From Calcarisporiella thermophila CBS 279.70 (taxonomy: Eukaryota > Fungi > Calcarisporiellomycota), in contig NW_027192195.1 of the NCBI RefSeq assembly GCF_041956535.1, positions 283,807 to 347,806 of the forward strand: a stretch of DNA of 64,000 bases, given 5' to 3'. Position 1 is the first letter of the stretch. Every line of letters begins with the position of its first letter. A program made the position numbers and the translations under genes. The notes beneath the pieces are model-generated. The model worked only from the letters and a program-made list of their open reading frames with translations. It was not told where the DNA came from and searched no databases. This document shows positions 22,799 to 50,186 of this stretch, one piece after another.

Positions 22799-24041
22799 AT
22801 GAGTAACCGAATCCTGCTGATCGGTGACAGTGACATTGACAAGCTCGTGCTTGTCCAAGGTATGCGACTGATTTTTATTCCTTGCGCCCGAGAGTGTGCG
22901 ATTCAACTGAATTCGAATTTGATGTAGACGTTCTCCGGAGAAGCAACCAACCCGCCCCCGATTCCTTGGATGCACCAGTGGGATGGCATATCGATACCAA
23001 GTACTATACTGCACAAGTCTTCTTTTCCTCCGCATCTTCCGCAGACGACACGCTCGATGGCGACGCAGTCGTATTCGTGTACAATAAGCAGCGATCGGGG
23101 GCATTCAAGCAGCTGGAGGAATGGATGGAGAGGATTGAGCAGCTGGAGCCATCCATTCAACTGTGCGTGGCAATGGGCGAGGGAGATTCAGAGGGCCATG
23201 AGGATTGGTGTTTGGACCACGGGTTTGATTTCGTTGATCTGAGCACAGCAGCAGATGGTATGTTACCCCCTCCCTCTTCTCTCTCCTCATTTCAATTGGC
23301 AAAAGAATCCATTCAAAGAAGAGAGTTCATTGATGGAAACCTCCTTTTCACCAGAGGATAGAAAAGAGGAGCGCGTGGCAGTGGAGCGGGTCATCGAAGT
23401 CCTAGAGGCAAACATGTGGGAGTCAATGGAGCGGAAGCAAGATCCGCGAGAGCAGGATTCTGCACAAAAAGGTAAGGCACGGCTTTCTTTTCACAGACGA
23501 AGGATTTGGCTGACCCTCTTTCTCTTAAATTCCTGGCCAAATCGAAGGGGAGTTAAGAGGGACGAATGAGCAGGCTGGGAAGCGCGACGAGAGCAAAGAG
23601 GGTGAGCATGGGGAGAAAGACGACCCAGAAAACGACGATCCCCTAGGAGAGGAAGCCGACATGCAGCGGCTTTTATTGAATGATCAAGGCAAGCGTTTTT
23701 CCTCTATGATCTACTCTGCCTTTTTGTTTTGTTTTCCTCCTCCTTTTCCATTCTGATCCCAAAGCATGCACATGAACAGACATGCCAAACAACGAAGAGG
23801 TCCAAGCTCTACGACAGGAGATCTTCGGGGACCTAGACGAGGAGGACGGATTCGACAATGCACTGGAGAAGCTGCGCGGCTTAAAAGGTATCTACTCCAT
23901 CTTCTCTCCTCTCCAACCCCCTTTCTAACTCTCCTTATTGCTTCTCTCCTCGCCTATGCAGCCAAGGCCCAGACGCTGTCGGACGACGAGAGACGTAAAC
24001 TGGCCGCCAAGGTCGCATTGAGCTTTTTCATGGAAATGTAA
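22799..24041 (+). CDS. IRC6: Alpha/gamma-adaptin-binding protein p34 (Irc6/AAGAB family)
   Basis: WHIDTKYYTAQV motif; WCLDHGFDFV; ERVIEVLEANMW; C-terminal LSDDERRKLAAKVALSF; multi-exon. Confidence 0.85.
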
Positions 24042-24677
24042 TATACACATCACGTTTAGCTTATTCACACAAACATATTATTATGACCCCACGCGAAATC
24101 ACATAGCATTCACTATAAAATATAAGTTCGATACACGATTACGAGTGAAAAAGGGGGAGGGGTATCCATGAATCAAAAGGAGTTCATCCTATTTACAAAA
24201 ATAAACGAAAAAAAATAAGCATGGGTTTTTGAAAAGGGGGACTGAGGGAATAGGGGGAGAGAGAGGGAGAGGGGGAGAGAGGGAGGGAAGAGAAGAGTAG
24301 GCAGGGGGAGAGGAATAAAAGTACGTACAAAAGCGTTAACAAACGGGATAAAAATAGACAAAAAAAAAAAGAATGTACATGTACAAAAGGGGGTCGTAGG
24401 AGAGAGGGAGAGAGGAGGTGGGGGGAAGGGGAACTCGGGCTGGGTGGGAGGTGGAGGGGGACACAAAGGAGAGGAATGGGGAACGAAAAATAAAACAGAT
24501 AGAAAACAGAAATAGTCGCCTAAATATAATTATAAAAAAATTGAACATCGAACAGGGTAGGGGTTAAAGCAAAATCACAGGCCAAACTCACTTCAATGTT
24601 ATTGAAAATAGAATATAGAATATAGAATATAGATATATATATATATATATAAACATCGATATTGATGGGGTAAGGTG

Positions 24678-26697
24678 TCATTCTTTCGATCCAACCGAGG
24701 ATTTTTTCGCATGTAACGACTTAGGCTTGCTGTAAACGTGGCATCGATGGGCGTGCCGATACCACAGCACCGAGTTGCGGCGTTTCGCGTTCTGGATGGC
24801 AATCCACTGCTGGCATTGGTGGCAATAGCCCTCTACGATGTCACCGTCGACGATTCGTCGCTCCAGGGGCTCTGTGAAGTGCTGGCCAGACACGGAGGAG
24901 ATTCCGTGATAGAATCTAAGCATGTCAGAGAGCAAGATTGGGCGTTAGTTTGGAGGGGAAACCGTCAGAGAGGAGAGGAGAGGAGAGGAGAGGAGAGGAG
25001 AGGAGAGGAGGGGGGGAATAGTTACTGCTTGTGGTACCAGTAGGCGCTGTTCTTCAGCTGCAGCCATTTTCCGGGATGACAGGTATCACAGTAGCCCTCC
25101 TTCAGCGGGCCAGAAAAGCGCACCCAGCTCGGGGTATACAGGTCCTCGGGGTATCGGAGTTTCTGCCGCCGCGGCTTGGCCTCTGGATCCTGGGCGGCCC
25201 GTGCGATGTCCTCCGGGGTCATATCCAGCGGAGGGGCGTCGCCGTCCTCGCCCTCGCTGGAGCGGGAGGAGCGGGAGCCCAAGTCGAACGACTTGGTGCG
25301 CTTTCGGTCGGCGACCATGCCGATGGAGGCGTCGAAGGGTTTGGCGGGGGGGGAGGTCGAGTCGAGCATCACAAGCGAGTCGCGTTTGCGGTGGAAGGGG
25401 CGGTGGGGTGGGGTGGGCATGGAGGAGGCGACAGCGGACGACGAGGGGCCGGAGGGCATGGAAAAGGGCGGGAGCGAAGAGGGGGCCGACGAGGACATGG
25501 GGGAGGTGGACAGGTATGGGGAGGCGGAGGGGCGGGCCGAGGGGAGGAACGAGCTGTAGGGCTGCCCTGCCGCGGCCGCGGCCGCCGCGTAGTAGCTCTG
25601 GCCCATGGGGTACATGCCCTGGCTGTACACGCTCTGGGGAGTCGACGAGGAGGGGGGGGTGGAGTCGAGGGCTGCTTCGTTCTGCGACCAGGAAAGCCGG
25701 ATCATCGCGCCGGGCGAATTCGACATGTTCCCCCGCATTTCGTCCGCGTAGTCGACCGACCGCTGGGAGGGGGGGTAGGTGGAGGGTTCGAGGTAGGCGG
25801 GGAGAGGCGACAGCCCGCCCGATGCATGATAGCCCATCCCCCCGGTGCCCCCGTTCCCGCTGACCGGCCCGCCGAGAGTCGCGCCGTGGCTGTTGGGCGC
25901 ACCCGTGAACTCGAAGTTGGACCCTGCCCCGAACCGGTATGAGGACTGGTGGGAGGGCTGCGAGAGCGAGTAGGGAGAGGGGAGCGAGACCAGCGGGTGG
26001 ACCTGCTGGAGGGGTTGTTGCTGTTGCTGTGGTGGCTGCGGCTGCGACTGTTGGTGCGGCGGTGGCGGGGGCTGTGGCGGCTGGGGGGTCTGGTGGGGGG
26101 GCTGGTGGTGCGGGTCGTGGGGGTGGTTCGAATGCTGGTCCCACTGCCGCCATGACTCGTGGCCAAAGTCGCCGGCGGGGGCCGGGCGTCGGAATTGCGA
26201 ATGGTCGAGCGAATCGTGCAGGAGAAACCCGGGCTGCCGGGTGGATCCATGCTGCGACGGCTGGAGCGAAGCAGGCATAGGCTCTGCGAGGGGAAGGACG
26301 CAGGGGCAGAGGAAAAGGCAAAAGGGAAAAGAGAGCAACGAGATGAGTTCTTGATCTGTTGATCCCGCTCCTAGCAACAATAGAAAGGGTTACCTCGCTC
26401 AACCCCGCCCGGCAGCCCGTGATCCTCGTCGTTTTTGACGGCGACGGGGCGGGGCTCCAGAGCGGCCAGTAGAATGTCCAGTGAGTTTGAGTCGTTGGCT
26501 GGGGCGGGGGCGTCCGCCGGGGCGGCGGCAGGGTAGGCGCCATAGAACCGGGCAGGGCTGCTGTAGCGTTTGGGGAGGGAGGTGTTGGCGAGCGGCTGGT
26601 AGTGCCGGTGGGAGGCTGAGTCCTGGAGCTGGGGCGGCGGCTCAGCAGCATTGGAGGAGGCGTTTTTTCCGGAGCGGCCTGAAGGTTGGGCAATCAT
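24678..26697 (-). CDS. Rua1/Meu26-like transcription regulator (DUF4451 C-terminal Cys/His domain) with a Gln/Pro/Ser-rich N-terminus
   Basis: DLYTPSWVR..KEGYCDTC..GKWLQLKNSAYWYHKQ|FYHGISSVSG..F..P..VEGYCHQCQQW..WYRHAHRCH; 2 introns. The start codon at 26697 is less certain. Confidence 0.8.
24967..25010. repeat. (GAGAG)n pentanucleotide microsatellite in an intron
   Basis: About 8 tandem GAGAG units. Confidence 0.85.
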
Positions 26698-29423
26698 GTG
26701 CCTGTATTCGGGAGTTTGGAGAGAGCCGAGAATAGTGGTCTATTTGTGTTCACTCTAATGCCGAATATCCAATTTGAGGGGAGGAAGGGGAGGGGGGGGG
26801 ATATGTCAAAATAGAGGGGGGGATGGAGAGGGGGACAGAGGGATAGGCAGGCAGGGCGAGCGCAGAGGAGGACTTAGCCGGTGATAGCGTTGGGGGAGGG
26901 GAGAAAAGATCCACGCTTGGAATGCGAGCTTGCCGGAGGCGATGTTAGCACTTGGGCGGGCCACAGCAATGGGCTTACACAATCGAACTGAGCTTCCTGA
27001 GAAAGGGCGGCGAAAGAATGGCGGAAATGGAGGCGGAGGGCGCGGCAGTGGCAGCGGCAGAATGCGCAGGGCGGAGACGGCGGGTAGGCGAATGGAACAG
27101 AGACAATTCTACAGGAAAAAGCAAATGCATTGGGCGAGAGGCCGGCATTAGCAATGCGAAAATGGGGGCGCCTCCGGGCTGGGGCGGGGGGGGGGGGGGC
27201 GTGGGCGGGCATACCTTGCAGAGAATCGCGATCAGAGGAGTTCAGGCAGCGCCGAGCGGGCGGAGGGCTAGTTTGTGCAGCAAGAGCAAGGGGAGAGAGA
27301 AAAGGCAGAGCGGGCACGGGTCAAAGGCATAAACACCGTATATTAAAAAAAGTCGCAATACGAGGTGCAGTGAGAGGCGGTGCGGGTGAGCAATAATCAA
27401 GGAGGTCACACATTACGACTTTTTGGGTTCGCGAGCTCACTTGTCATCCTCCCCTTCTTCTATTTTAACCTCGCGCCCAAATTGGCAAGAGTGGACGGGC
27501 AGGCAGGGCGGCCAATCCGCGAGCCGCGCGGTCCATTGGGGGGGCCGCCAACCACCTGCCCTCTTGCAACCCCACAGCCTCTGCCCTGCTGCCCTCGCCC
27601 CTCGCCCCCCGGCCCTTGCACAATCTCTCCTCTCGCAAACAATCCGATCCGACTCTCGCGATGGCGCACCGGATTCACCCGCGGGAATGGTCGACTTTAG
27701 GGTTTAAGCTTCCTCATCGTGCACCAGCTTAAGCCAAAAAAGCTCGCAACCCCGCCTGCGGCTCCCCTCCCCGCCCCGCCCGGCCGCACCCTCGCGCCCG
27801 CCGCCGCCCCACCCCGCCGCCCCCGCCCGGCTCGCCTCGCCTCGCCTCGCCTCGCCGATGCCGCGCCCTCCCCCTCTCTCCTGGTCGCAGGCCGCAGCCC
27901 TTCGGCTGAGTATAATTTTGCTCGTGACAACCGGGCCCTCCTCTTGTTGCTCCTCTGTCACGCGCTACCCGCCGCTCCAAACCATTTCCCTCCCCTCCCC
28001 CTACTAATCGAGAAAAGACTCATTTTAGAGTTCTGGTGGCTTGATCCGCCCTCATATACGCGAATCAGACACGGCGAATCCTGTTTTGTCTGCTGTTCTA
28101 GGAAAGGAAGCTTATCCGCCGTCGATGAGTGGAATGCAAAAGCCTAACCACGATAACCATAGCTGCTGCCGCTGCTGCCGCCGCTCACCATCCCACGAGC
28201 AGAGATAAGCGCATGATCTTAGCAAAACCGAGCAGCCCGCCGCGTAAGAACCGTGACGGCATTAGATAATCCGCGATATGACACCGCCGATACGCAAGAA
28301 TGGCACATTCCGCTGAAAAGCTAAAAGGCTGTGGCTGCGAGCTACCGCGTTGACAAGCCATGCCTCTCGCACACCCCTCCCCCCCCGCCCCTCTCCGCAA
28401 ATTTCCTGTGTCGCTATCCCAGACATCCAGAAAACTCCGGCCTGCAACCGATAATTTAAATTCGGAACAGTTACGCGCGTCTGTTTCTGCCCTGTTTCTG
28501 CCGGGCCGTGGTGCCTTGAACGCAGACCCCCCTTGGTCGCCGGCAAGGACCTCTCTTCGGCCCCCAGGCACTCGCCATTTTGAGTCGTTCCCAAATCATT
28601 TGCAGAATGCCGGCCCCTCATGCTAGAACCTCATTTCCACCCTAAACCCGATTCTCGGAGACGTGTAACCAGCGGGATCTCCCAGAGAGGATCTCCCGCC
28701 ATCTGATGATGCCGTATTTTTGCTCTCATTTAGACTTGAGGAAACAGAGTTCCCTAAACCTACGAAGGCGTGGGAAATTCATTCCTCACGACTCGAAATC
28801 GGCTGGGAATGCTAAGCGGCGGCTTGCATGCCTTCCATCGCGCTTGGCGCGCCGGGAACGGCGGCGGTCGTCGTTGCTGGCCGAGCCTGCGGCCGGCCGC
28901 TTTTGACACAAGTCCCCCGTCAGGGCCGACACGTCTCTGTGTTGCATAGCAGACGTCATGGGATGCCACCGTTGAACGGCCTGCCATTGGCTCCCTTAAA
29001 AGGGAAGGGGAAAACCTTCACTGCATTGGGCCCGGGGGGTCGAATGAGAGGGGCTGCTGATCTAGGTGGGAACGCAGCGGGGGAAGGGTGGTTCTGCCGT
29101 GGCGGGAGTACTGGAGAATAAAGTCAGGCGTAGGCAGGAGGGGCGAATATGCCGATTTGAAACTGACACCGGCTAATAGGGTGCTGCATTAGTCCTTGCT
29201 TTATTTTACTGTACTTTAATTCCATATGCATCTGTGCGGTGGCCGCTGTGAATGGCCACCATGATCATGACATAAATATAGGTGGATGTATATAAAACAA
29301 TATAAATAGTTCATGGTGGAAACGGGCACACAATGCCTACTCTCAACCGCCGAGCCATTGAATGCAGCCATCCCCCTCCTAATAGATACAACAAAATTCT
29401 TGGTGAAATAAAAGAAGGCGCCC

Positions 29424-36251: not shown

Positions 36252-39200
36252 ATGACTATTGACGCGGTTATTTGTAACAAGAAAGCAAGGGAATTCTGGA
36301 TGAAAGCTCTCAAGGGCCAAGTTCCCTTCGCTCCAAAAGTGATGCAAAGGAATTGCCATCTGAATTCTCAAGCTCATTCCGTTCTACAGCACCAATTGTC
36401 AATTACCATGAGTGAATTTGACAATGCCTGCATCAATAAAGGAATGTCGAAGCCAGTTCTTATTCAAGTTGTCTGGGCTTTATTATTGTCTCAATACTTT
36501 AAGGAAAATCAATCGACGTTTGCTTTTGTAAGTGACGATGAGATTGAAGGGTAAGGTTCATTGACAGGATTATCAATCTAAAATCATGATTATGCTAACT
36601 TTCTTCTGTCCACTAGTAGCTACATGACGTATTCGACCAGGATAATTCGCCCTAACGTTGACATGAATCAGAAAATAACTACTATGATGAAGGAATTGCA
36701 AACTTTTCACCAGATATCAGCCCCATTTGCGAATATCGGATTCCAGGGAATCAAGAGATGCTTAGGAGTGACTGACGATGCGGTGCTATTTCGTACATTG
36801 ATTGAATTTCGTTCGCTCGATTCTATTTGGCCCGATTATAGTGCGGCGGAGTTGGAAAATGTTCAGATGTTAATTATACACGAGGGAAACTCGATTAAGA
36901 TCAAATTTGATAACTCTCACCGCTCGATTAAGGATGTTAAGAATATGTTTTCCCACTTTGATTACTTACTGAAACAAATTTTGTTGGATGATCCGTATAA
37001 TCCGAGCTTGATATCCGAATTTCGCGTGCAAGAACCATATCAGTGGGCACTCTTTCAAGAATTCTGTAAGGGCGAATTTAGGCCAATTCCATTTGAATGC
37101 CTTCATCATGGCTTTGAGGCAATGGCTCAGCTCCAGCCAGAAGCTATTGCTGTTGAGAAAGGCAATAAAACCATCAGCTATAAGGACCTGGATGAGCGTG
37201 CCAATATGCTTGCTCACGCTCTACGTCGACGAGGAGTCACTCCTGGAGTATGTGTTGGTCTTGTGATCTCACGATCCATTGAGATGGTAATCGGGATCCT
37301 TGCTATCCTTAAGGCTGGTGGTGCCTATGTTCCTATTGATGCAGCATTCCCTTGCGAACGGATTGCTTCCATCTTGGATGATGTGGCCAGCCCTGTGTTG
37401 TTAACGACAACAATTGATCAAAAGGCTGTTCCCTTAGAGTACTACGAAGAGGTTATGCTCATTGATGGGCAAGATTGTTCATCGGGAGATACTCTCAAAC
37501 CAGAGGAATTAGCCAGAGGAGACGATTTGGCATACATTATGTACGTCTATTCTAATTTGATTTTTTTTTCTCTTTCATTGCTAATGCTTATTATAATAGA
37601 TTCACCTCGGGTACAACGGGCAAGCCAAAGGGGGTCATGCTTGCCCACAAGGGCGTTGCCAGCAATATCATGATGCATCCTATTACATCTCTCCTAGGCC
37701 CCGGGACTCGCGTCGGTCAGTTTTCAGCAATAGCATTCGATTCATCAGTGGCAGACATATTTTCGACGCTATCAAAGGGAGCCACCCTCGTCCTACAAGG
37801 AGCGGATTTCTTTGCCACAGTTGCAAGCGTAGATGTCGTCACTCTGACCCCGACGGGACTCCAACACCTACACCCCAATGATTATAGGAATATTAAAGTT
37901 ATTAACGCGATTGGTGAAGCTTGTCCCAACAGTCTAGTTGATCGATGGGGCGACAAGGTTAAATTCTACACAGATTATGGGCCAACGGAAGCTTCAATTT
38001 ATTGCACATGTTCGGAGCCGCTTCGACCAGGAATGACAGCAACAATGGGGAAAATACTTCCCAATATGCGGGCTTATATCCTAGACAATAATCGTAGACC
38101 ACTTCCGATCGGGGCTAAAGGACAGCTATACATTGGCGGCATTGGGGTTGCATTGGGTTACCTCAATCAGCCTGAGTTAACTTCCGAAAAGTTTGTAGAG
38201 GATCCGTTTGGATTGCCTGGAAGCAGGATGTATGCGTCTGGCGATTTTGCTCGCTGGTTACCTACGGGTCATCTTGAGTTTTGTGGCAGAAAGGATGATC
38301 AAATCAAATTGAGTGGTTATCGAATTGAGTTGGAAGAAATTGCTAGAGCAATCAACCAGTATTCATCGGTTGAGTTAGCAGCAGTATTAGTCAATGAAAA
38401 CAGACTCATAGGTTATGTTACCCCCTCCAGTGTGGAGGTAGAATCCCTTCGCAGCTGGCTATTTAGTATATTCCCAGATTATATGGTACCAACAGCAATC
38501 GTACCATTGGAGTCATTTCCTATGACAGCTAATGGAAAGATAGACAAAGCGGTATTAAAACAGACACCGCTTCAACAGAGTCGCAAGGAAAGGCTTGCTC
38601 CGGTTACCGATAAAGAGAAGCTTATAGTCAAGTTAATGGCATCAGTTCTTAATGTCGATGAGGGTTCGATTGACCTCAACGCATCTTTCTTTGCACTCGG
38701 CGGCGATTCCATCTCAACCATCTCTTTGGTGTCTGCATTCCGAAGAAACGGTTTACACATCAATGTGGCGCAGATATTCAAGGCACCTACTCCAGTTAGA
38801 CTGGCTGCCGCTGCTCAAGAAAGACAGGATAAACCCGTACAGAGCTCAGATACCGTGGTAGGGAATCTCCCACTTACACCGATACAACGATGGTTCCTCG
38901 ATTCAAACAGAGCCAACCTCAACCATTACAACCAAGGATGGGTTCTTACTCCACGAGAATTTATTGATTTCAAAAACTTCAAACAGGCCATTGTTTTACT
39001 TGTGGCCCACCATGATATGCTCAGGGCACGCTATTCCAAATATGACGGTGGCGAATGGGAGCAGTCAATTGTAGACGTTAACTCGTGCCGGGCTAATGTT
39101 CGATTGCTTACTTGCAAAGATGAGCAAGATTTCCAGAATAATATCAAGGCAATGGCTTCATCATTAAATATAGAGGAGGGAATAATGCACTGCGCTGCAT

Positions 39201-42200
39201 TGATCAATGTAAATGTTCGCTTGCATATTTCTATAAAATTTGAAATTTCGTAGCTATGGCTAATAATCATTTTATAATTTCCAACCTGTAGCTTGGTGAC
39301 GAGCAAAGAATTTATTTCACCATCCATCATCTCGCTGTTGATCTCGTGGCTTGGAGAATTCTTTTGGAGGATCTTGAGTTGTTACTTAAGGGAGGGAAAC
39401 TAGAAGAAAAGACTACCTCGTTCAGAGATTGGGCTATATCTCTGAAACAACAGGCATTATTATTTGATCCTTCACCGTGGAAGCGGTACATAAATACAAC
39501 TGAAATGGATATGCTAATAAAGGGCGATAGTGTCGAGTAAGATGGCAATAATTGTAGTTGTGAATGCAATCGTTTTTAACATTATCTTAATTTGTTTAGA
39601 GCTACTTGCACCGGAAACCAGCTTCTGATAAATAAGATCAATTTCAAAGCGTCCAGGCTGTTGGATGAGGCAAACAAAGCATATAGAACCAGTACACAAG
39701 ATTTGATCCTTGTAGCTCTTCTACAAAGCTTCCATATGATTACCGGGGAATCGAATCTATCACTCTTTCTTGAGGGTCATGGCCGCGAGCCTTGGAAGAG
39801 TGAACTAGATGTCTCACGGACAGTAGGATGGTTCACCACGGTATACCCTGTCGCTCTGTCCATTGCAGATAAAGAGCCTCTTAGCATTTTAATCGAGAAG
39901 GTTAAGGGCACTCTTCGAGCAGTTCCTGACAACGGCCTCTCCTATGGTGCTATCAAATACCTCGCACCATCCACTGAGGCGACGGACCCAATCAAGAGAC
40001 ACAAAATGACCCCGATAACCTTCAACTATTTCGGGCACTTCCACAATTTTGAAAAGACGGCTGCATTTTTTCGTCCTGACGAACGCTATATTGGCGATGA
40101 TAGCGCAGACGACGAAATTTTCACTGAAATAGAGATGAATTGCTACTTTGATGTTAACGGGTGTCTACAACTGAACATTGAATTCAATTCTTCTTTATTC
40201 CAGTTCGAGATCCTGTCCTCATGGGGATCGAAATGGGCCGAGACAATGGAAAGGATTATTGACCACTGCTGTGACTCCAATATTCCAGGCGGTTTCATAG
40301 CATCAGATTTCACTCTTCTATCAGATCCGGCATTAGTTTCAGAGTTTGAAAAGGAGCATTTACCGGCGCTACGGCTCAAGCCTCGTGACGTGGAAGACAT
40401 CTACCCCACAACACCCTTACAGGCGAGTTTCATCTCTGCGCTTGCTCGGGATCCTCAAGCATATGTGGTGCAATCGGTGTATGAAATCGAAGGAGATTTT
40501 GATATCTCCTTGCTGAAGGCAGCCTGGACCCATGTTGCCTCTGCTAATGCTATCTTGCGAACTGCATTTGTCTCCACACATGAAGGCATTTTCCAGGTTG
40601 TGCTCAAATCTCCCCCAGATGTGTTTGAAGAAACATTGGAGTGGAGTGAAGGAGAGGTAGAGGAGCTCCAAGCTGGCTACTTAATGACGGATCGTCGCCG
40701 CGGTTTTCGATTAGATAATATTACGTTTGCAAGGATAACAGTAGTCCATATCAAAGATACTAATCGCTACCGACTCTTTTGGACCTTGCATCATTCTATA
40801 ATTGATGCATGGTCTGAGTCGATATTAATCAGTGATATATTGAAAGCATATTCAAATGGATGTGTTGATTCTCGGCCATCATTCAAGGAACACGTGGAAA
40901 CAGTACTTTCAATCAACTTAGATGAAGCCAAAGAGTATTGGAAGTCGGTGTTTGCAGGAGCAAATGTACCCGATAAATTGGATATTTTAGACTCCATAAC
41001 CAATTCAGAGCAAAGTGGGCCTATTACAAAGTCATATAGCCTGGATGTCCCAGTCGATGCAATTATGAGATACTGCAAACTCTCCGGTGTAACTATGTCC
41101 AACTTCCTTCAAGCAATATGGGCAATTGTTCTGAGACATTATACTCGATGTGATGATGTGATCTTTGGATGCGTTGTGATGGGGCGTGATGAAAGAGTGT
41201 ATGATGTTACAAGGTACGTTCAAATTTTTTTAACTGCACCTGTAATTCCTATGATAACACCTAGAAATACTAATACTAATTGAATTGTATATATAAATAT
41301 AATAATATTTATAGAATAATCGGTGCGTTTATAAATACTATACCAACTCGGATTATGATGAAGGATTCGATGACTATAGCCGAGCTTCTAAAAGCAGTGC
41401 AAGACTACAATGTGGCTTCGCTTCCTTACAACCATGTTCCTCTTACCGATATCAAGCGATGGACAGACCTACCTTGGACTCGGGAGATGTTCACGTCTCT
41501 CTTTTCATATCAGAACATTAGTTCTCAACTAGATACCGTCAAAAATGTGCCAAGTGGACTTAAAATGACTGAGATCGAGCAATTCGAGGCCACTGAATAT
41601 CCTATTGCTCTTACGATTAGCTCGACGGAACACTCTCTGTTTGCTGACGCTTTAATCAACACTGCATTGATTGGACATGGAGCTGTGGATAGGATGATAT
41701 CTAAATTCAACGAAGTTTTGCTGATTCTACTTAATGCTTCTCCCGAGCGCCTTCCAACTCTACGTGAGCTTGACTCACTATCATCTGAAGATAGCTCATT
41801 TATCGCGGAAATAAGCCATGGAAAGCAAGCCCCGCTTTTGTATCCCTGCTTGCACCATGGCTTCGAACATAATGCTGCGATACAAGCTAATACCCTAGCT
41901 GTGGAGGAGCCACAAGGAAGGAGTATTACATATGGTGAGCTGGATGCTCGCGCTAATGGTCTTGCACATATCCTTCGTGACCAAGGTGTGGCTCCAGGAC
42001 ACAGCGTTGGACTAGTAATCAAGCGTTCGATTGAGATGATTGTTGGAATCCTCGCAATTCTCAAGGCTGGTGGAGCTTATGTGCCGATAGACGCCGCTTT
42101 ACCGAAGAACCGTATCGACTATATGTTAAAAGACTCGTCATGTACTGTTATAGTGGCAACCCAAGCGGATTTCTTATCTGTACACATGCATGAGAACTAT

Positions 42201-45200
42201 GGAGTCGTCATTATTGACGAGTTCATGCAATCATTCCCGGAGCGCAGGTCCAAACCGGTAGAGCTGTCATCCAGTTCGGATAATGCATACGTGGTGTACA
42301 CATCTGGTACAACTGGTAAGCCAAAAGGAGTATCAATCAGTCATGGAGGTGCAATGAATTGCATTCAAGAGCTTCTTCAGAAAAATGGTTCAGGCCCGGG
42401 AGTATATCAATCACAATTCATGGGGATAGGTTTTGATGGTGCGGTTGCAGAAATATTTACCTGCTTTACTCACGGTGGAACCTTAGTTCTTCGCTCAGAT
42501 AGTGATCTATTTGAATCGCTGAGGAACGTCGAGGCGTTATTTATAACACCGACTGGTCTTCAACATCTGAAGCTCGAGCATGTTCCCAAATTAAGAGTTA
42601 TGACTGTTGGAGCCGAGGCAGTTCCTCAATCTCTGGTAGACGTGTGGACACAGCACGTCGAGCTGTTTAATGTATATGGCCCAACCGAGACAAGTATAAT
42701 ATCCAGTATGCAGAAGCTTAATGCAAATGAGAGAATTGGTGTTGGCCGACCTTTCAATAATGCTTCATATTATGTTCTTGACCAAGCTCTTAAAATGGTT
42801 CCATTGGGCGTCGCTGGTCAACTTTATATCGCAGGTGCTGGGGTATCAAAAGGCTATATCAATGAGCAGAAGTTGACCTCAGTAAGTTTTATCGACAATC
42901 CCTTCGTTCCAGGAACATTGATGTACAGGACTGGTGATATGGCGCGTTGGAATATGCAAGGCAATTTGGAAATCATAGGACGAGTTGATGATCAAGTGAA
43001 AGTTAAGGGATATCGAGTAGAGCTTAGTGAAGTTGCGACTGCCATAAATTCACTCAAAGGGGTAGAAGCAGCCGTTGCCATAGTCAAGGATAATACACTG
43101 TATGGTTTTGTTACGCCTTTCATTAAGAATGTCGATGCGATTCATGACTCTTTATTCGATTTACTGCCTGGATACATGGTGCCAGCTAAAATTGTGGCAT
43201 TGGACAAGTTCCCTCAGACATGCAATGGAAAGGTCGATAAGTCTAAGCTAATGGATATGTTACTTCAGCCTGCAATGGATAAGCAGCTCCCTGTTACCGA
43301 TAAACAAAAACTAGTTATCGATTTGATGGCATCAGTTCTCGACATCGATGTGAGCCAGATCAATCTCAATACATCATTCTTCGCCCTCGGAGGTGATTCC
43401 ATCTCGGCAATTGCTCTGGTATCTGCATTCCGGAGACACGGTCTAATCATCAGTGTAGCACAGATTTTCAAGGCACCTACTCCTGCTAGAATGGTAGCAG
43501 TTGCTCAAGAGAGGCGCGATAAACTAACATACAGCTTGGATTCTGATGGAAGAGACCTCCAATTAACCCCCATCCAATGCTGGCTCCTTGGTACAATGAG
43601 ACATGACCCCAACCATTTCAACCGAGGATGGGTCCTTACTCCACGAGTCTATATTGATTCTGATAAGTTTATCCAATCCATTGCTTCCCTTGTTGCCCAC
43701 CACGATATGCTCCGAGCTCGCTACAGAAAAAATGATAGTGGAGAGTGGAAACAGACAATTGTAGAGAACAGCTTGTGCAAGAGTAACATTAGAATACTTA
43801 CTTGCAAGGATGAACAAGAGTTACAGGATAATATCAAGGCAATTGCTACATCATTGGATATCGAGAAAGGGATCATGTATTGTGCAACCCTACTAAATGT
43901 AAGTATCGCTTTGCATAATCTAATCTCTATTGATGTCTGATCATTATATATATTTTGCATCTTCAATTGACAAGGTGGGTAATGCGCAAAGAATATATTT
44001 CACAGCCCACCCCCTTGTTGTAGACAATGTCTCGTGGGAAAATATTCTCAGAGACCTTGAACAACTGTTGAAAGGAGGGAAACTACGGGAAAGGACTTCA
44101 TCTTTTCAGGAATGGGTCATTTCACAGGAACATCAGACTTCGATATTTGATTCTACTCTCTGGGAGAAATACTTCAACACAGCAAGCATGAACGTTCTTT
44201 TTATGGAGAACGGCATTGAGTAAGTAATTTACATTGGCTCTCTAAAGCCTCATCATAATGCTAATGCACTTCTAAATATTAAAAGAATCGCAAGTAGTAA
44301 TAACCAGCAAATTGTAAACAAACTCAGTGCTACTGTATCATCACTTCTTGATGCAGCAAACGAAGCATATAGTACAGACATTCAGGATTTGATCCTTGTT
44401 GCACTTCTTCTTAGCCTCCATGAGATAACCGGGGCAACAGATTTATCATTTATGATTATCGCCAATTCGCGTGAGTTTATACAAAACCATCTAGATTTGT
44501 CGCGAACAGTTGGGTGTTTCACCAATATTTACCCAGTCACATTGTCGACATCTCCTGCAGCTTCTCTTAGCACCGTGATTAAAGGAGTTAAAAGCACTCT
44601 ACGGAAAATTCCTAAAGAGAGATTCTCACACGGTGCCATCAAATATCTTGCGCCATCTTTCGAAGCAACAAAATCCATCAAGGACCACAGCATTTCACCA
44701 ATAGCCTTCAGCTATCACAGACGTTTCCAATTTTTCGAAAAATCTGACTCTTTTTTCACTCCTGATATCAAAGTTGATGCCTGTGAAATTCCTGAGGATG
44801 AGATTTTCAATGGGATTAAAATCAGGTGCTCGTTTGATGCTAGCGGATGTTTACAGCTGAGCTTTGTATTCAATGCCTCGTTGTTCCATACCGACATACT
44901 ATCCTCCTGGGGATCAAAATGGACCGAAACGATGGAGAGGATTGTAGAACACTGCTCTAATCCCAATACGCCGGGCGGCTTCATTGATTTGGATTTCTCG
45001 CTACTCTCAGATCACGCACTTATATCGGAGATTGAAACTAAGCATTTACCAGCATTGAAACTTCTGCCCCGTGATATTGAAGACATCTACCCAGCTACCC
45101 CCTTGCAAACGAGCTTCATCTCTGATCTCATTCGAGATGCTTCATCAAATGTGGTACAATTGGCATATAAGGTTGAAGGAATATTCAATGAAAACCGTCT

Positions 45201-48200
45201 GAGATATGCTTGGTATAAGGTTGCAATGGCAAACACTATCCTTCGTACTGCCTTTGTCTCAACACAAGCAGGTGTTTTTCAGCTCCTGCTTAAGACTCCT
45301 CCAAAAGTATTTGAAAATTCTCTGACATGGTACCCAGAAGAAGCAGACGAACTTCAAAAGGAGTTCCTGGCAGCCGACCGCCATCGTGGCTTTAATTTGG
45401 AAGATATCTCCTTTGCTAGGATTACAATTGTTCATATCGAAGGAACTAATTGTTATCGACTCTTCTGGATCATGCATCACTCTATCATAGATGGATGGTC
45501 TATTTCACTTCTACTTGATGATATGTTGAAGGCATATCGTAATGTCGAAGTGGAGGCTCGACCTCCATTCAAGAATCACGTTGAGGCAATTTTATCTGCT
45601 GACGTTGAGAATGCTAAAGAATACTGGAGATCTGTGTTTGAGGGTGCAACTCTGCCAGAGCCTCTTAAGCTGACTGATGGCAATACTGATCCCGAAACCG
45701 CTGAGCCAATCACTCGGGCGTATGACTTGGGGATTACGCTGAATGAACTTCACGCCTATTGCAAGGATATCGGAGTGACTCCTTCCAACTTCCTTCGATC
45801 TCTTTGGGCCGTCATTCTTCGGCACTATACCCGATGTGAGGATGTAACCTTTGGATGTGTAACCATTGGTCGGGATGAAAGCGTTGAGGGCATTACTAGG
45901 TATGTTGGATTTCGTATTTGAATAGAAGTGTTGGTCTACATTTTTTGGTTATAAATTTGATTGCAAATTTTTCTAACAATCGTTATCAATGCGTTATAGA
46001 ATGATAGGAGCGCTGATCAATACCATCCCGATTCGAGTCGTGTTGAAAGATTCGATGACTTTCAACGAGCTCCTCCAAGCAGTACAAGATTTCCATGTCA
46101 TTTCTCATCCCCACAGCCACGTTGCACTTAGCGATATTAGACGTTGGACTGGTCTTCCTTGGACACAGAAGATGTTCCCAACCATATTCTCTTTTCTCAA
46201 TTTTGGGCTACCACAATCATTTATTGGAGGGATAGAAGTTGGCTTTAGAATGACTGAAATTGAAGATCTCGAAGAGAACAATGTACGCTCAACCCAAAAC
46301 CAACATAAGCAATACAGTGGGATTGACTACCCATTGATTATCACAATTGATGCTGCAGGAGACAATATCAAGGCAATTTTAACTTTCAACCCTAGCATGG
46401 TTGGGATCAAAGTATTAAATAGGATGATGGCTAAATACCAGGATATTATACGAATGACCTTGTGCCATTCAACGGAAACCCCACAATTATTGGTTGACCT
46501 AGATCGGCTAAACAATAATGAAGAATCAGATCTTCAAAAATTTAGCGTTGGGGAAAATTATACCGTTCCATTTGAATGCTTACACCACGGCTTTGAAGAA
46601 ATGGCACAGCACTATCCAGAAGCTATTGCTGTCGAAGATGACGATAGAGCTATTAGTTACTTGAACCTCGATAAACGCGCTAATATAATTGCTCGCACTC
46701 TGCGACAACAAGGAGTCATTCCTGGAGTAACCGTTGGTCTTGTGATCTCGCGTTCCATTGAGATGATAATTGGGATCCTAGGTATCCTAAAGGCTGGTGG
46801 TGTCTACGTGCCAATCGATGCAGCATTTCCTTGCAAACGCATTGCATCCATCTTAGAACATGCATCCTGCTCGGTCTGTTTGACAACGACAAAAGACAAG
46901 AATGCAATTCCTCCAGAGTATTCACATAGGATCATATTCATCGATGGACAAAATTGGTTATCTGAGGATGCCAGCAAACCTGTAGAATTAACGAAAGGAG
47001 AGGATCTTGCATACATTATGTAAGTGAAATGTTATGTTCTTACTGTATATATTTTTACACTATGGCTGACATATTTAAATATAGCTTCACGTCGGGTACA
47101 ACAGGTAGATCGAAGGGGGTCATGATTCGTCATAATGGTGTGATTAGCAATATCATGGTACACCCTATTACTTCACTCCTTGGTCCTGGAACTCGAGTCG
47201 GTCAGTTTACAGCAATAGCATTTGACTCTGCTGTTGCAGACATATTTTCAACTCTGTCCACTGGGGCCACACTTGTTCTTCAAGGATCAGATTTCTTTAC
47301 CACATTAGCAAATGTGGATGTGGCAACTTTGACTCCGACTGGACTACAGCACTTGGATCCAAACGACTATAGAAACATTAAGATTGTTAACGCGATCGGA
47401 GAAACTTGTCCTTCCAGTTTGGTTGATCGTTGGGGAGATAGGGTCAAATTCTTCTCAGATTATGGTCCCACCGAGATATCTATTTATTGTTCTTGCTCAG
47501 ACCCACTTCGTCCAGGCACGCCAGTTACTATGGGGAAAGTACTACCAAATATGAGAGTATACGTATTAGATAATTATCTTAAACCAGTTCCCATTGGAGT
47601 CAAAGGACAAATATATGTTGGTGGTATTGGGGTTGCACTGGGATACCTTAACCTGCCTGAACTCACCTCGGAGAAATTCCTTGAAGATCCATATGGACCA
47701 TCCGGGAGTAGGATGTATGCCACTGATGATTATGCTCGTTGGCTACCCACTGGAGAGTTGGAATTCTGCGGCCGAAAAGACGATCATGTTAAACTGAGAG
47801 GATACCGTGTCGAACTCCAAGAGATTATGATTGCAATGAATCAGTACCCATCAGTTGAAAACTCGGTGGCAATAACTAAAGATAATGGTATCTTTGGCTT
47901 TGTTACTCCTATACACACTGACACCAACACTCTACGAGAATTTTTGTTCGATATTCTGCCCGAATATATGGTCCCCAGTACTATCATTGCATTAGAACAA
48001 TTTCCGACTACTGCAAATGGTAAAATAGACAAGTCCAAACTTTGTGAAATAGTAGCACAGCGAACAGATACACCACGACATCCGATCACCGAAAACCATA
48101 AATTAAATGAGGTCAATAAGCTTCTCTTACGGCACCCGCATATTTGTGATATCGTAAGTACCGTTTATCACAACGTGCATCAAGAAGAAACAATAGTAGC

Positions 48201-50186
48201 CTACTTTGTTCCTGAAACCAACGCGTGTATCGATGGTTTATTTTTCTCGACGAAATGTGAGCACGGAAAAGAAACCGAATTTCTATTGGAGAGTGGATGC
48301 GAAGATAGCGTACATTTATTTACTACGGTATTCAAAAAATACTTAAAGTCAAATCTGCCAAATCATCCTATTCCCTCTGGTGAGTTAAATACTTTGTCCT
48401 GAGTATGATTCGATTTAATTATATTTTAACCTTATATCTAGTGTTTATACCTCTGAAGAAGATACCGCTTACTCCTCAAGGGAAAATTGACCAAGATGCA
48501 CTTCCCCTCCCTGATACTTTGTCCCCTATTTCAGTGTCAATTGTTCCTGCAATTCAAGAAATGTCACTGACAGAGCAGATCATCCACGATATTTGGGTTC
48601 ACCTGCTTCCAAATCCTCCCAGACCATATATATCTCCAGACCTAAATTTCTTTGATTTAGGAGGGGATTCGATCCTTGCGACCCGATTAATCCTAGAACT
48701 AAGAAAGTCACACTTCAAAAATGCGCCCCTGAATTTAATACTTCGTGAACCAACTATATCTGGAATGGCAAAAAAGCTAGAGAAACTAAATGATGCTGGC
48801 TCTGGATGTGTGGAAAATGGAAGTAAAGCCATCGCCGCTGCAACAACTTCAATAGACGAAGGATTTAGTGACCATCTGGCCAGAAATAGACCATTTACTG
48901 CGGAATATGACTATGCATCTGAAATACCTGCCTTGATTAAAAGATATTTGCCAACATGTATCCCATTCCCTGAATCAGAAAAATCGTACGGGAAGACCTA
49001 TTTTCTTACCGGAGTAACAGGCTTTCTTGGTATTTTCATTTTAGAAACACTTCTCAAGCTGGACCCTTCAAGTCGCGTCATATGCCTTGTGCGCTCTAAA
49101 ACTCGAGAGGCTGCCATGGAACGTATAATTCAGGCGGCACAATCGCACCTAGTCTGGGAAAAAGAAGAATTCACTGCGCGTGTTGAAGCCGTGTGTGGAG
49201 ATCTAGGATCAAAAAAACTCGGTCTTTCAGACACAGAGTGGCAACACCTTTCACGAGATGTTGATGCAATAGTACACAATGGTGCACTCGTCCATTGGGC
49301 TTATACATATAACCAACTTTATCCTGCGAATGTTGAGGGAACAATGTGGTGCCTAAAGCTTGCTCTGACTTGCCGAACAAAAACATTTACCTTTGTAAGC
49401 TCAACATCAATGCTTGACACTGAATTTTATATGCAGCTCAGCGAAGAAATTATTAAAAGAGGTGGGCGCGGAATTAGTGAGAAAGACGATTTGGAGGGAA
49501 GCCGAGTGGGTTTAAAGAGTGGCTATGGTCAAACAAAATGGGTTGCTGAAAAACTAATTATGGAAGCTTGTGCTCGTGGAATGCCCGCAGCAATAGTAAG
49601 ACCAGGCTATGTACTTGGAAATTCGAAGACCGGAGTCTGCAATACCGACAACTTTATCTGGCGTCTAGTAAAAGGTTGCGTAGAGCTGGGTGCTGTACCA
49701 GATATACCAGAAGCAGTAAATATGTGCCCGGTTGACTATGTGGTAAAATGTATCGCGAAAGTCGCCATACGACCTGCACACGAGTTTAAACCGGATGAAG
49801 TAGTATTTCAAGTTACTCACCCAGCGCCATCGTTTACATTCAATGATCTTTTTGACTTTCTTCCTCTCTACGGATATGAGGTAGAACAGCATGACTATGA
49901 TAAGTGGCGTAATATACTCTTGGAATATACCTTGCGATCAAAGGAAAATGCTTTGTTCCCTTTGTTACCGGTATTACTCGATGAATCTCGTTCAGCTAAC
50001 AAATCTCCTGAGATCGACAACACCAATACATACCGACTTCTTCAAGGGGAAAATTCGCCTCGGATGACCGTAGACCTTGTGGGATTATATTTGGCCTATA
50101 TGGTGAGAATAGGATATATGTCAAAGCCCAGTAAAAGCGGTCTTAAATGCCTTCCAGAATTACCAGAGATATATACATTGATGTAA
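36252..50186 (+). CDS. Trimodular nonribosomal peptide synthetase: C(half)-A-T-E-C-A-T-E(inactive)-C-A-[Lys2-like Asub]-T-R; 11 exons, ~4,397 aa
   Basis: Introns at 36551-36616, 37541-37599, 39209-39291, 39537-39599, 41214-41314, 43899-43974, 44220-44285, 45900-45999, 47020-47084 and 48380-48441 join the ORFs in frame (13,194 nt). Motifs: three TSGTTG/YGPTE/NGK(I/V)D sets; three LGGDS; E1 HHLAVD, EGHGRE, RTVGWFT; C domains HHSIID(A/G)W; R domain GVTGFLG and GYGQTKWVAE. Confidence 0.93.

Follow-up and report, generated by a model that had tools for sequence, protein, structure and literature searches.

Nonribosomal peptide synthetases (NRPSs) that discharge their product through a terminal reductase (R) domain are already known as such. 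In the bacterial examples, NcpB of the nostocyclopeptide pathway and the Xenorhabdus ATRed systems, which make peptide aldehydes or imines, the chain leaves a terminal pair of thiolation (T) and R domains through NAD(P)H-dependent reduction of the thioester, and PMC7586950 presents aldehyde release through 2-electron reduction by terminal NRPS R domains as established. The synthetases GrsA/GrsB, TycA-C and LgrA of Brevibacillus and Aneurinibacillus follow a logic in which an epimerization (E) domain precedes a condensation (C) domain of the D-donor type. Among the early-diverging fungi, Mortierella alpina possesses intron-bearing NRPS genes, MpcA and MpbA, that consist of bacterial-looking modules, start with a truncated C domain lacking the HH motif and make D-amino acids on the assembly line (bioRxiv 10.1101/2020.08.21.262279); M. 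alpina is also reported to make the thrombin-inhibiting peptide Ro 09-1679, and the legend of Figure 1 in the same source defines L-Arg-al (bioRxiv 10.1101/2020.08.21.262279). The gene analyzed here, which occupies positions 36252-50186 on the forward strand of a 64,000-nt window from contig NW_027192195.1 of Calcarisporiella thermophila CBS 279.70 (all coordinates below are positions in this window), resembles each of these systems in part.

With NcpB (29% identity) and ATRed, this gene has in common the terminal T-R pair, but its R domain belongs to another lineage, and the bacterial enzymes are encoded in operons with partner genes and make peptides of other lengths. The Brevibacillus and Aneurinibacillus synthetases provide the best solved-structure matches for the adenylation (A), T and E domains (LgrA, with E-values of 1e-172 to 1e-174, TycA, and GrsA, 1AMU), and the succession of an E domain and a D-donor C domain recurs here along with an A2 code close to the Leu code of GrsB and TycC; however, the identity is only ~35-45%, and the Calcarisporiella gene is eukaryotic, is interrupted by spliceosomal introns, lacks 9 residues between motif A4 and position 278 and ends in a reductase rather than in a thioesterase (TE) domain. 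MpcA and MpbA differ in having dual E/C domains and a TE cyclase that yields cyclic pentapeptides, whereas in the Calcarisporiella protein separate E domains are followed by D-donor C domains, with a reductase at the end.

The Calcarisporiella gene is a real, intact, intron-bearing NRPS gene of a fungus that is both thermophilic and early-diverging. The favored reading, to which we assign a probability of roughly 55%, is that it encodes a functional, linear, three-module synthetase that makes a tripeptide aldehyde with a free amino terminus, D-X-L-Leu(like)-L-X-al. Module 1, composed of a noncatalytic C remnant and A1-T1-E1, would load an alpha-amino acid X and epimerize it on the carrier; C2, of the D-donor type, would join D-X to the aliphatic residue, most likely Leu, that is supplied by A2; E2 would be a structural relic, with residue 2 staying in the L configuration; C3 would couple the dipeptide with another X, which A3, with the same pocket as A1, would load; and the Lys2-derived T3-R would release the tripeptidyl thioester with NADPH, in the manner in which Lys2 acts on aminoadipate. 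Collinear use of the modules, the substrates, the stereochemistry, the aldehyde end state, expression and bioactivity are what we infer from the sequence. The support for this interpretation comes from the LYS2 ancestry of the R domain, the Leu-like A2, the identical codes of A1 and A3 and the pattern of E domains in the paralog P0001 (XP_069245482.1) of the same fungus. An earlier note on this DNA had proposed the product D-X-(Ile/Val/Leu)-X in the form of an aldehyde or an alcohol, and the architecture, the codes, the states of E1 and E2 and the R domain all fit such a collinear arrangement, with the ancestry of R favoring the aldehyde, although X, the behavior of C3 and the product itself are still predictions. 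The placement of the product in the scaffold class of leupeptin survives as a chemical likeness only.

The gene consists of 11 open pieces in changing frames, with 10 introns between them (36551-36616, 37541-37599, 39209-39291, 39537-39599, 41214-41314, 43899-43974, 44220-44285, 45900-45999, 47020-47084 and 48380-48441). All introns are canonical (GT..AG), 59-101 nt long and one per junction, each with a donor of the GTAAGT/GTACGT type, a branch site similar to CTAAC and the acceptor YAG, and the resulting coding sequence of 13,194 nt has no internal stop and a single terminal stop. Domain and homology searches were run per exon, and the exons were joined locally for the frame check and for comparison with XP_069254113.1, the ‘uncharacterized protein VTP21DRAFT_9225' of Calcarisporiella thermophila, which was retrieved with exon 6 as the query against 1.84 billion representative proteins. 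This public protein matches exons 6 and 11 with 100% identity, and its 4345 amino acids make up an exact suffix of the independently built spliced model, the sole difference being the start (the public Met at 36408 and the model ATG at 36252). The longer start at 36252 is plausible because the 52 extra N-terminal residues still align with the segment of the C2 and C3 condensation domains around the AKEYW motif. No ortholog outside C. thermophila was found in the exon 6 search of the representative proteins, and a literature search found no paper on Calcarisporiella NRPSs.

Per-exon comparison to Pfam and NCBIfam recovers three AMP-binding domains, three PP-binding domains, five domains of the condensation fold, two of them of the E type, and one NAD_binding_4 or thioester reductase domain, in the order truncated C, A1-T1-E1, C2-A2-T2-E2 (dead), C3-A3, vestigial Lys2 A-subdomain fragment and T3-R. 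The three A domains match AMP-binding and TIGR01733, contain motifs A3, A4, A5, A8 and A10, and all retain D235 and K517, as befits adenylation domains of NRPSs. The carrier serine motifs, found along with Pfam matches, are GGDSIS in T1 (38600..38857, Ser codon 38708-38710) and in T2 (43290..43547, Ser codon 43398-43400) and GGDSIL in T3, and the condensation motifs typical of modular NRPSs are HHSIIDA (40789-40806) in C2 (40387..41825) and HHSIIDG (45475-45492) in C3 (45073..46549), again within Pfam matches. The first C domain (36252..37070) is a remnant of ~270 residues that comprises the C-terminal lobe only, lacks HHxxxDG and begins ~40 residues past the expected site of this motif; its assignment comes from a weak Pfam Condensation match of exon 1, alignment to C2 and C3 and a BLASTP match collinear with the C-lobe of C2. 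Upstream of 36252, tblastn yields no trace of the missing N-lobe at E <= 1, and no HHxxxD is present in any forward frame. Intron 1, located in this remnant, coincides in position with introns 5 (in C2) and 8 (in C3). Exons 4 and 7 have the same length (245 nt), as do exons 5 and 8 (1614 nt), which reveals an internal duplication in the gene.

The release end of the protein is unusual. Past the A10 motif of A3 itself (NGKID), there is a second, partial A-subdomain (48064..48494, assigned by alignment to LYS2) with an A10-like PQGKID, which is split by intron 10, followed by T3 (48546..48788; Pfam, NCBIfam and motif GGDSILATR, Ser codon 48669-48671) and the R domain (48966..50183). Exon 11 aligns with positions 803-1370 of the Lys2 equivalog profile TIGR03443 at 578.7 bits, below the cutoff of 1030 that marks a full Lys2, whereas the R domain scores well above the cutoff for thioester reductases (TIGR01746, 348 bits compared with 213; PF07993, 261 bits). 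The R motifs TGVTGFLG (49008-49031, the Rossmann TGxxGxxG), FVSSTS and YGQTK (49524-49538, YxxxK) are intact, in keeping with the earlier call of reductive release. The genome has its own full-length LYS2 on another contig, which covers TIGR03443 positions 1-1375, and the exon encoding T-R is 61% identical to it in the genome search and 60% in tblastn; directly upstream of this match, the vestigial A-subdomain fragment is 29% identical to the same gene. Intron 10 splits the same codon as a LYS2 intron, after Pro-Ser-Gly. Given the ~60-61% identity and this common intron position, the T3-R tail is a copy of the 3' part of a fungal LYS2, acquired as DNA. The NRPS gene itself is not a Lys2. Altogether, the last ~700 residues of the protein (partial A-subdomain, T and R) correspond to profile positions ~770-1370 and share with Lys2 the carrier motif GGxSILATR, the reductase motifs TGxTGFLG and YxxxK and the position of the intron; unlike Lys2, however, the NRPS holds only the C-terminal 40% of that protein, with the adenylation core replaced by three NRPS modules, and its predicted substrate is a tripeptidyl rather than an aminoadipyl thioester. 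The contrast between T3-R, at ~60% identity, and the redundant fragment, at 29%, argues that T3-R is in use. The GC content at third codon positions (GC3) is 0.34 in exon 11 (48444-50183) compared with 0.73 in the 3' exon of the genome's own LYS2 (L007:3056-4822), a disparity that could reflect an old fusion followed by compositional drift, an AT bias resembling that of repeat-induced point mutation, or arrival of the tail together with the gene from an AT-richer fungus.

The best solved relative of the A4-A5 segment of A1 (37071..38548; Pfam, motifs and alignment to 1AMU) in an HMMER search is the GrsA phenylalanine-activating domain (1AMU), from which the pocket of A1 departs as follows: D235 is D, A236 is S, W239 is A, T278 is T, I299 is N, A301 is I, A322 is D, I330 is I and C331 is Y. 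Two further methods, MAFFT and a profile alignment that includes 1216 other A domains, give the code DSATNIDIYK for both A1 and A3 (46550..48033; Pfam and motifs) and DGAFTGVIIK for A2 (41826..43241; Pfam and alignment); thus, the codes that the earlier note had derived by hand alignment are recovered, that of A1 by all three methods and those of A3 and A2 by the latter two. The mapping of the pocket columns is sound because the same pipeline recovers, in other proteins, textbook codes for Thr, Ser, Val, Pro, Asn, Orn and others (DFWNIGMVHK, DVWHFSLVDK, DAFWLGGTFK, DVGEIGSIDK and DLTKVGHIGK among those recovered). In all three A domains (37601-38000, 41316-43898 and 47086-47500), there are ~9 residues fewer between A4 and position 278 than in GrsA and TycA, and the residues that follow position 301 (GEACPNSLVDRW) show an unusually high similarity to the A domain in PDB 8G95/8G97, a ‘dimodular nonribosomal peptide synthase'.

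Over 473 residues, A1 and A3 show 70% identity, and yet their codes agree in 10 of the 10 positions, which fits selection for one common substrate. The A2 code is identical in 6 of 10 positions, with three more changed conservatively (F/Y, I/V and I/V), to the code DGAYTGEVVK that is listed as Leu(43) for GrsB and TycC in the curated table of 508 bacterial signatures in the PMC12283262 supplement, and it has six positions in common with the Ile code DGFFLGVVYK. An aliphatic substrate, with Leu as the first choice, is a reasonable call from this code, and a Leu-like A2 agrees with the overall Brevibacillus-like character of the modules. Among the 1216 domains, the codes nearest to that of A1 and A3, apart from those of paralogs, are DSATTAEVWK and DSATIAEVWK, each with 5 of 10 identities along with D/E, I/V and Y/W changes. 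The His signatures in the same table all start with DS (DSALIAEVWK, DSELTAEVCK, DSPLIAEVWK and DSQFIGQVVK), and some of the Trp signatures listed there pair an acid at 322 with an aromatic side chain at 331 (PMC12283262 supplement). The A1/A3 pocket is polar (S236, T278, N299, D322 and Y331) and hence weakly supports a ranking of X with His-like residues first, other polar or N-heteroaromatic residues next and basic residues lower. Basic residues fall behind because the canonical Arg, Orn, Lys and Dab pockets place the acid at 331 or 278, whereas here the Asp is at 322 and a Tyr is at 331.

The two E domains differ sharply. E1 (38873..40386) contains IHHLAVD (39322-39342), EGHGRE (39772-39789), RTVGWFT and FNYFG and reaches 83.7 bits with TIGR01720, above the cutoff of 74.2, as expected of an active epimerase. 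The same columns of E2 (43563..45072) read AHPLVVD (44005-44025), IANSRE (44458-44475), RTVGCFT and FSYHR, and the score, 55.9 bits, is under the cutoff. Loss of the second His of HHxxxD and of the Glu in EGHGRE should abolish epimerization, as indicated by mutagenesis of the GrsA E domain. With both HHxxxD and EGHGRE kept in E1 and both lost in E2, the previously proposed combination of an intact E1 and a dead E2 is upheld, and E2 is, to judge from these replacements, catalytically dead. In a maximum-likelihood tree of E domains, the two from this gene group as sisters (support 93/93), with branch lengths of 0.28 for E1 and 0.61 for E2, so that E2 evolves ~2 times faster than E1. E2 is full length, shows no indel relative to E1 over 456 amino acids and is 55% identical to it, compared with 51% for the C2/C3 pair, which fits a retained scaffold. 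Decay of E2 into a pseudodomain is ruled out by the lack of indels and by the identity to E1 on par with that of C2 and C3, and inheritance of a dead E2 in common with P0001 is ruled out by the sister relationship of E1 and E2. P0001 independently combines a live E1 with a subsequent dead E2 (AHCLAVD) and dead E3 (ANSLAVD).

The best matches of C2 and C3 in PDB are the BacC E-C didomain, McyB, PvdL, TycB1 and SrfA-C. For each of the two domains, the eight nearest non-self neighbors are all C domains located behind an E domain, compared with a base rate of 144 of 1134 (13%) among the C domains from other organisms. Both C2 and C3 can accordingly be assigned, by apparent descent, to the D-donor (DCL) type.

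Several of these features weigh against a line that works as a straightforward source of the D-X-Leu-X aldehyde. On the side of the substrates, the His-type match for X involves just 5 of 10 identities, and Asp322 is common in the related chytrid A domains, too, so that it may be a legacy of the lineage and not a determinant of specificity. On the side of release, some R domains reduce their product on to the alcohol, and one of these, the alcohol-forming reductase MxaA, is the best solved relative of the Calcarisporiella R domain, with an end-to-end alignment of 379 residues and 226 bits. This speaks for an alternative reading, itself unlikely, namely, that the line works but its end product is not the free aldehyde, being instead an alcohol, formed through 4-electron reduction by R or by cellular reductases, or the outcome of further reaction of the aldehyde (imine, hemiaminal or transamination). 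Peptide aldehydes with a free N-terminus are reactive, and the protein has no acylating starter C domain to cap the N-terminus. However, Lys2, a 2-electron aldehyde-former, is a much nearer relative of the R domain than MxaA is, in terms of both the TIGR03443 score (578.7 bits, compared with 226 bits for MxaA) and the identity to the genome's own LYS2 (~60-61%). Because the R domain is LYS2-derived, Lys2 stops at the aldehyde and R domains of NRPSs are known to do so, the aldehyde is more likely than the alcohol to be the first product.

The remaining points against the tripeptide aldehyde concern module 3 and the condition of the gene. C3, a D-donor domain by descent, may disfavor the L-configured donor delivered past the dead E2; the A3 domain has a P-to-S replacement in the P-loop (GRSKG) and a G-to-D replacement in motif A7 (YATDD), both of which are unusual; ~120 residues of the vestigial A-subdomain separate the A10 motif of A3 from T3, an insert that could impair carrier shuttling; and the GC3 of the gene, 0.34-0.43 compared with 0.52-0.70 in the neighboring housekeeping genes, hints at weak expression or at another mutational regime. 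Together with the AT-rich, gene-poor flanks, these features are what would be expected if the enzyme were expressed but crippled or stalled, with module 3 or the release step inefficient; the line would then have failed recently or be in the process of failing, and the yield of tripeptide would be low or nil. Such a failure appears improbable given that the frame of 4397 codons is open and all catalytic motifs of the A, T, C and R domains have been preserved even though the duplicated units differ by 30-50% and the divergence from LYS2 has reached 39%, that the unequal identities of T3-R (~60%) and of the redundant fragment (29%) reveal unequal constraint, and that the succession of a dead E domain and a C domain is kept in P0001 as well. 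The parallel arrangement in P0001 suggests that C3 is relaxed, or else the line would be slow at the C3 step. Finally, noncollinear use of the modules (skipping or iteration) or supply of residue 2 as a D-amino acid, so that the product is not a simple D-L-L tripeptide, would satisfy a D-donor-type C3, and the loading of D-amino acids from separate racemases is an occasional feature of fungal NRPSs (bioRxiv 10.1101/2020.08.21.262279), but this is quite improbable with a complete A-T pair in each module, a canonical linear domain order and no racemase gene among the long open stretches of the window.

The closest relatives of the gene are the paralogs P0001 (5540 amino acids) and P0127 (XP_069256332.1, 2756 amino acids), which are 48-66% identical to the unit encoded by exon 6 and have in common with it the style of introns within modules and the Asp at 322 in the A1/A3-type domains. 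In contrast to the reductase-terminated protein, both paralogs end in a Pfam FSH1 serine-hydrolase domain, rather than in a TE, R or terminal C domain; P0001 also has a fourth module, and the pocket codes are different, for example, DAAKNVDIHK and DGGKDIDIFK. Outside Calcarisporiella, the nearest relatives of the modules, at 35-38% identity, are giant NRPSs of the chytrids Irineochytrium, Dinochytrium and Polyrhizophydium and of the oomycete Aphanomyces. This distribution suggests that bacterial-looking NRPS modules with E domains form a clade spread across eukaryotes. For the A-subdomain-T-R region, the nearest long proteins are four-module NRPSs with a terminal R domain from Mortierella (P0152, P0153 and P0154 from M. 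antarctica and M. alpina; ~4400-4600 amino acids), with 37-43% identity at 86-97% coverage, and mis-fused Lys2 gene models are ~40% identical to the same region. The Mortierella proteins share the GGHSILATR-type carrier and the terminal NAD_binding_4 domain but have the organization A-T-C-A-T-C-A-T-C-A-T-R, with ordinary C domains (HHIISDGWS), no E domains and unrelated modules, and are less similar to the Calcarisporiella R domain than the genome's own LYS2 is. The four modules, the lack of E domains and the unrelatedness of the modules rule them out as orthologs, a relationship brought up by the thrombin inhibitor Ro 09-1679, whose sequence may be Arg-Leu-Arg-al.

A more detailed scenario can be offered only tentatively, and it is unlikely to hold in every part: bacterial-type modules would have been taken up, the T-E-C unit duplicated within the gene, the second epimerase silenced, and the FSH1-hydrolase release domain that is usual in this family swapped for a LYS2 tail along with its intron, with a product of the D-His-Leu-His-al type.

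The surroundings of the gene contain only genes of the housekeeping type and are poor in candidates for a biosynthetic cluster. The nearest gene upstream encodes an enoyl-CoA hydratase (32.6-33.1 kb, reverse strand), and downstream there are a gene of the fatty-acid-hydroxylase superfamily (52.3-53.5 kb, forward strand) and one for an ankyrin-repeat protein (54.6-55.7 kb, forward strand); farther out, there are genes for an F-box protein, a PUF protein, malic enzyme, signal peptide peptidase and a protein resembling lytic polysaccharide monooxygenases, and a C2H2 zinc-finger protein is encoded ~15 kb upstream of the NRPS gene. Of the neighbors named in the earlier note, the enoyl-CoA hydratase stands, and the gene called ERG3 is ERG3-like at the level of the superfamily. 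The long open stretches of the window, which were scanned, contain no transporter, cytochrome P450, methyltransferase or other tailoring enzyme and no adjacent or dedicated regulator, in agreement, within the window, with the description of the gene as a stand-alone NRPS. The immediate flanks (33.3-36.2 kb and 50.2-52.2 kb) are gene-poor, with a GC content of ~35% and no Pfam match in their open stretches. Elsewhere in the window, a block at 24000-28000 has a GC content of 56-63% (54-63% over 24-30 kb), strong GC and AT skew and many overlapping frames on both strands, and it includes a stretch of 535 amino acids at 25089-26693 (reverse strand) without a Pfam match.

Few nonribosomal peptides are known from early-diverging fungi. 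What is new here is the unusual and traceable release module on a reductase-releasing NRPS: the locus represents a natural swap of release domains, in which the sister genes end in an FSH1 hydrolase and this gene ends in a LYS2-derived T-R, and the junction is still visible in the form of the leftover A-subdomain fragment and the inherited intron, which makes it useful for the engineering of NRPS termini. The dead but retained E2 that precedes a D-donor-type C3 amounts to a natural test of the strictness of such C domains. If the synthetase indeed works with its LYS2 tail, a reductase of primary metabolism would have been recruited to release a multiresidue nonribosomal peptide, which would be the first characterized product of this NRPS family, and a D-capped tripeptide aldehyde of thermophilic origin, should that be the product, could, speculatively, offer a new scaffold for protease inhibitors.

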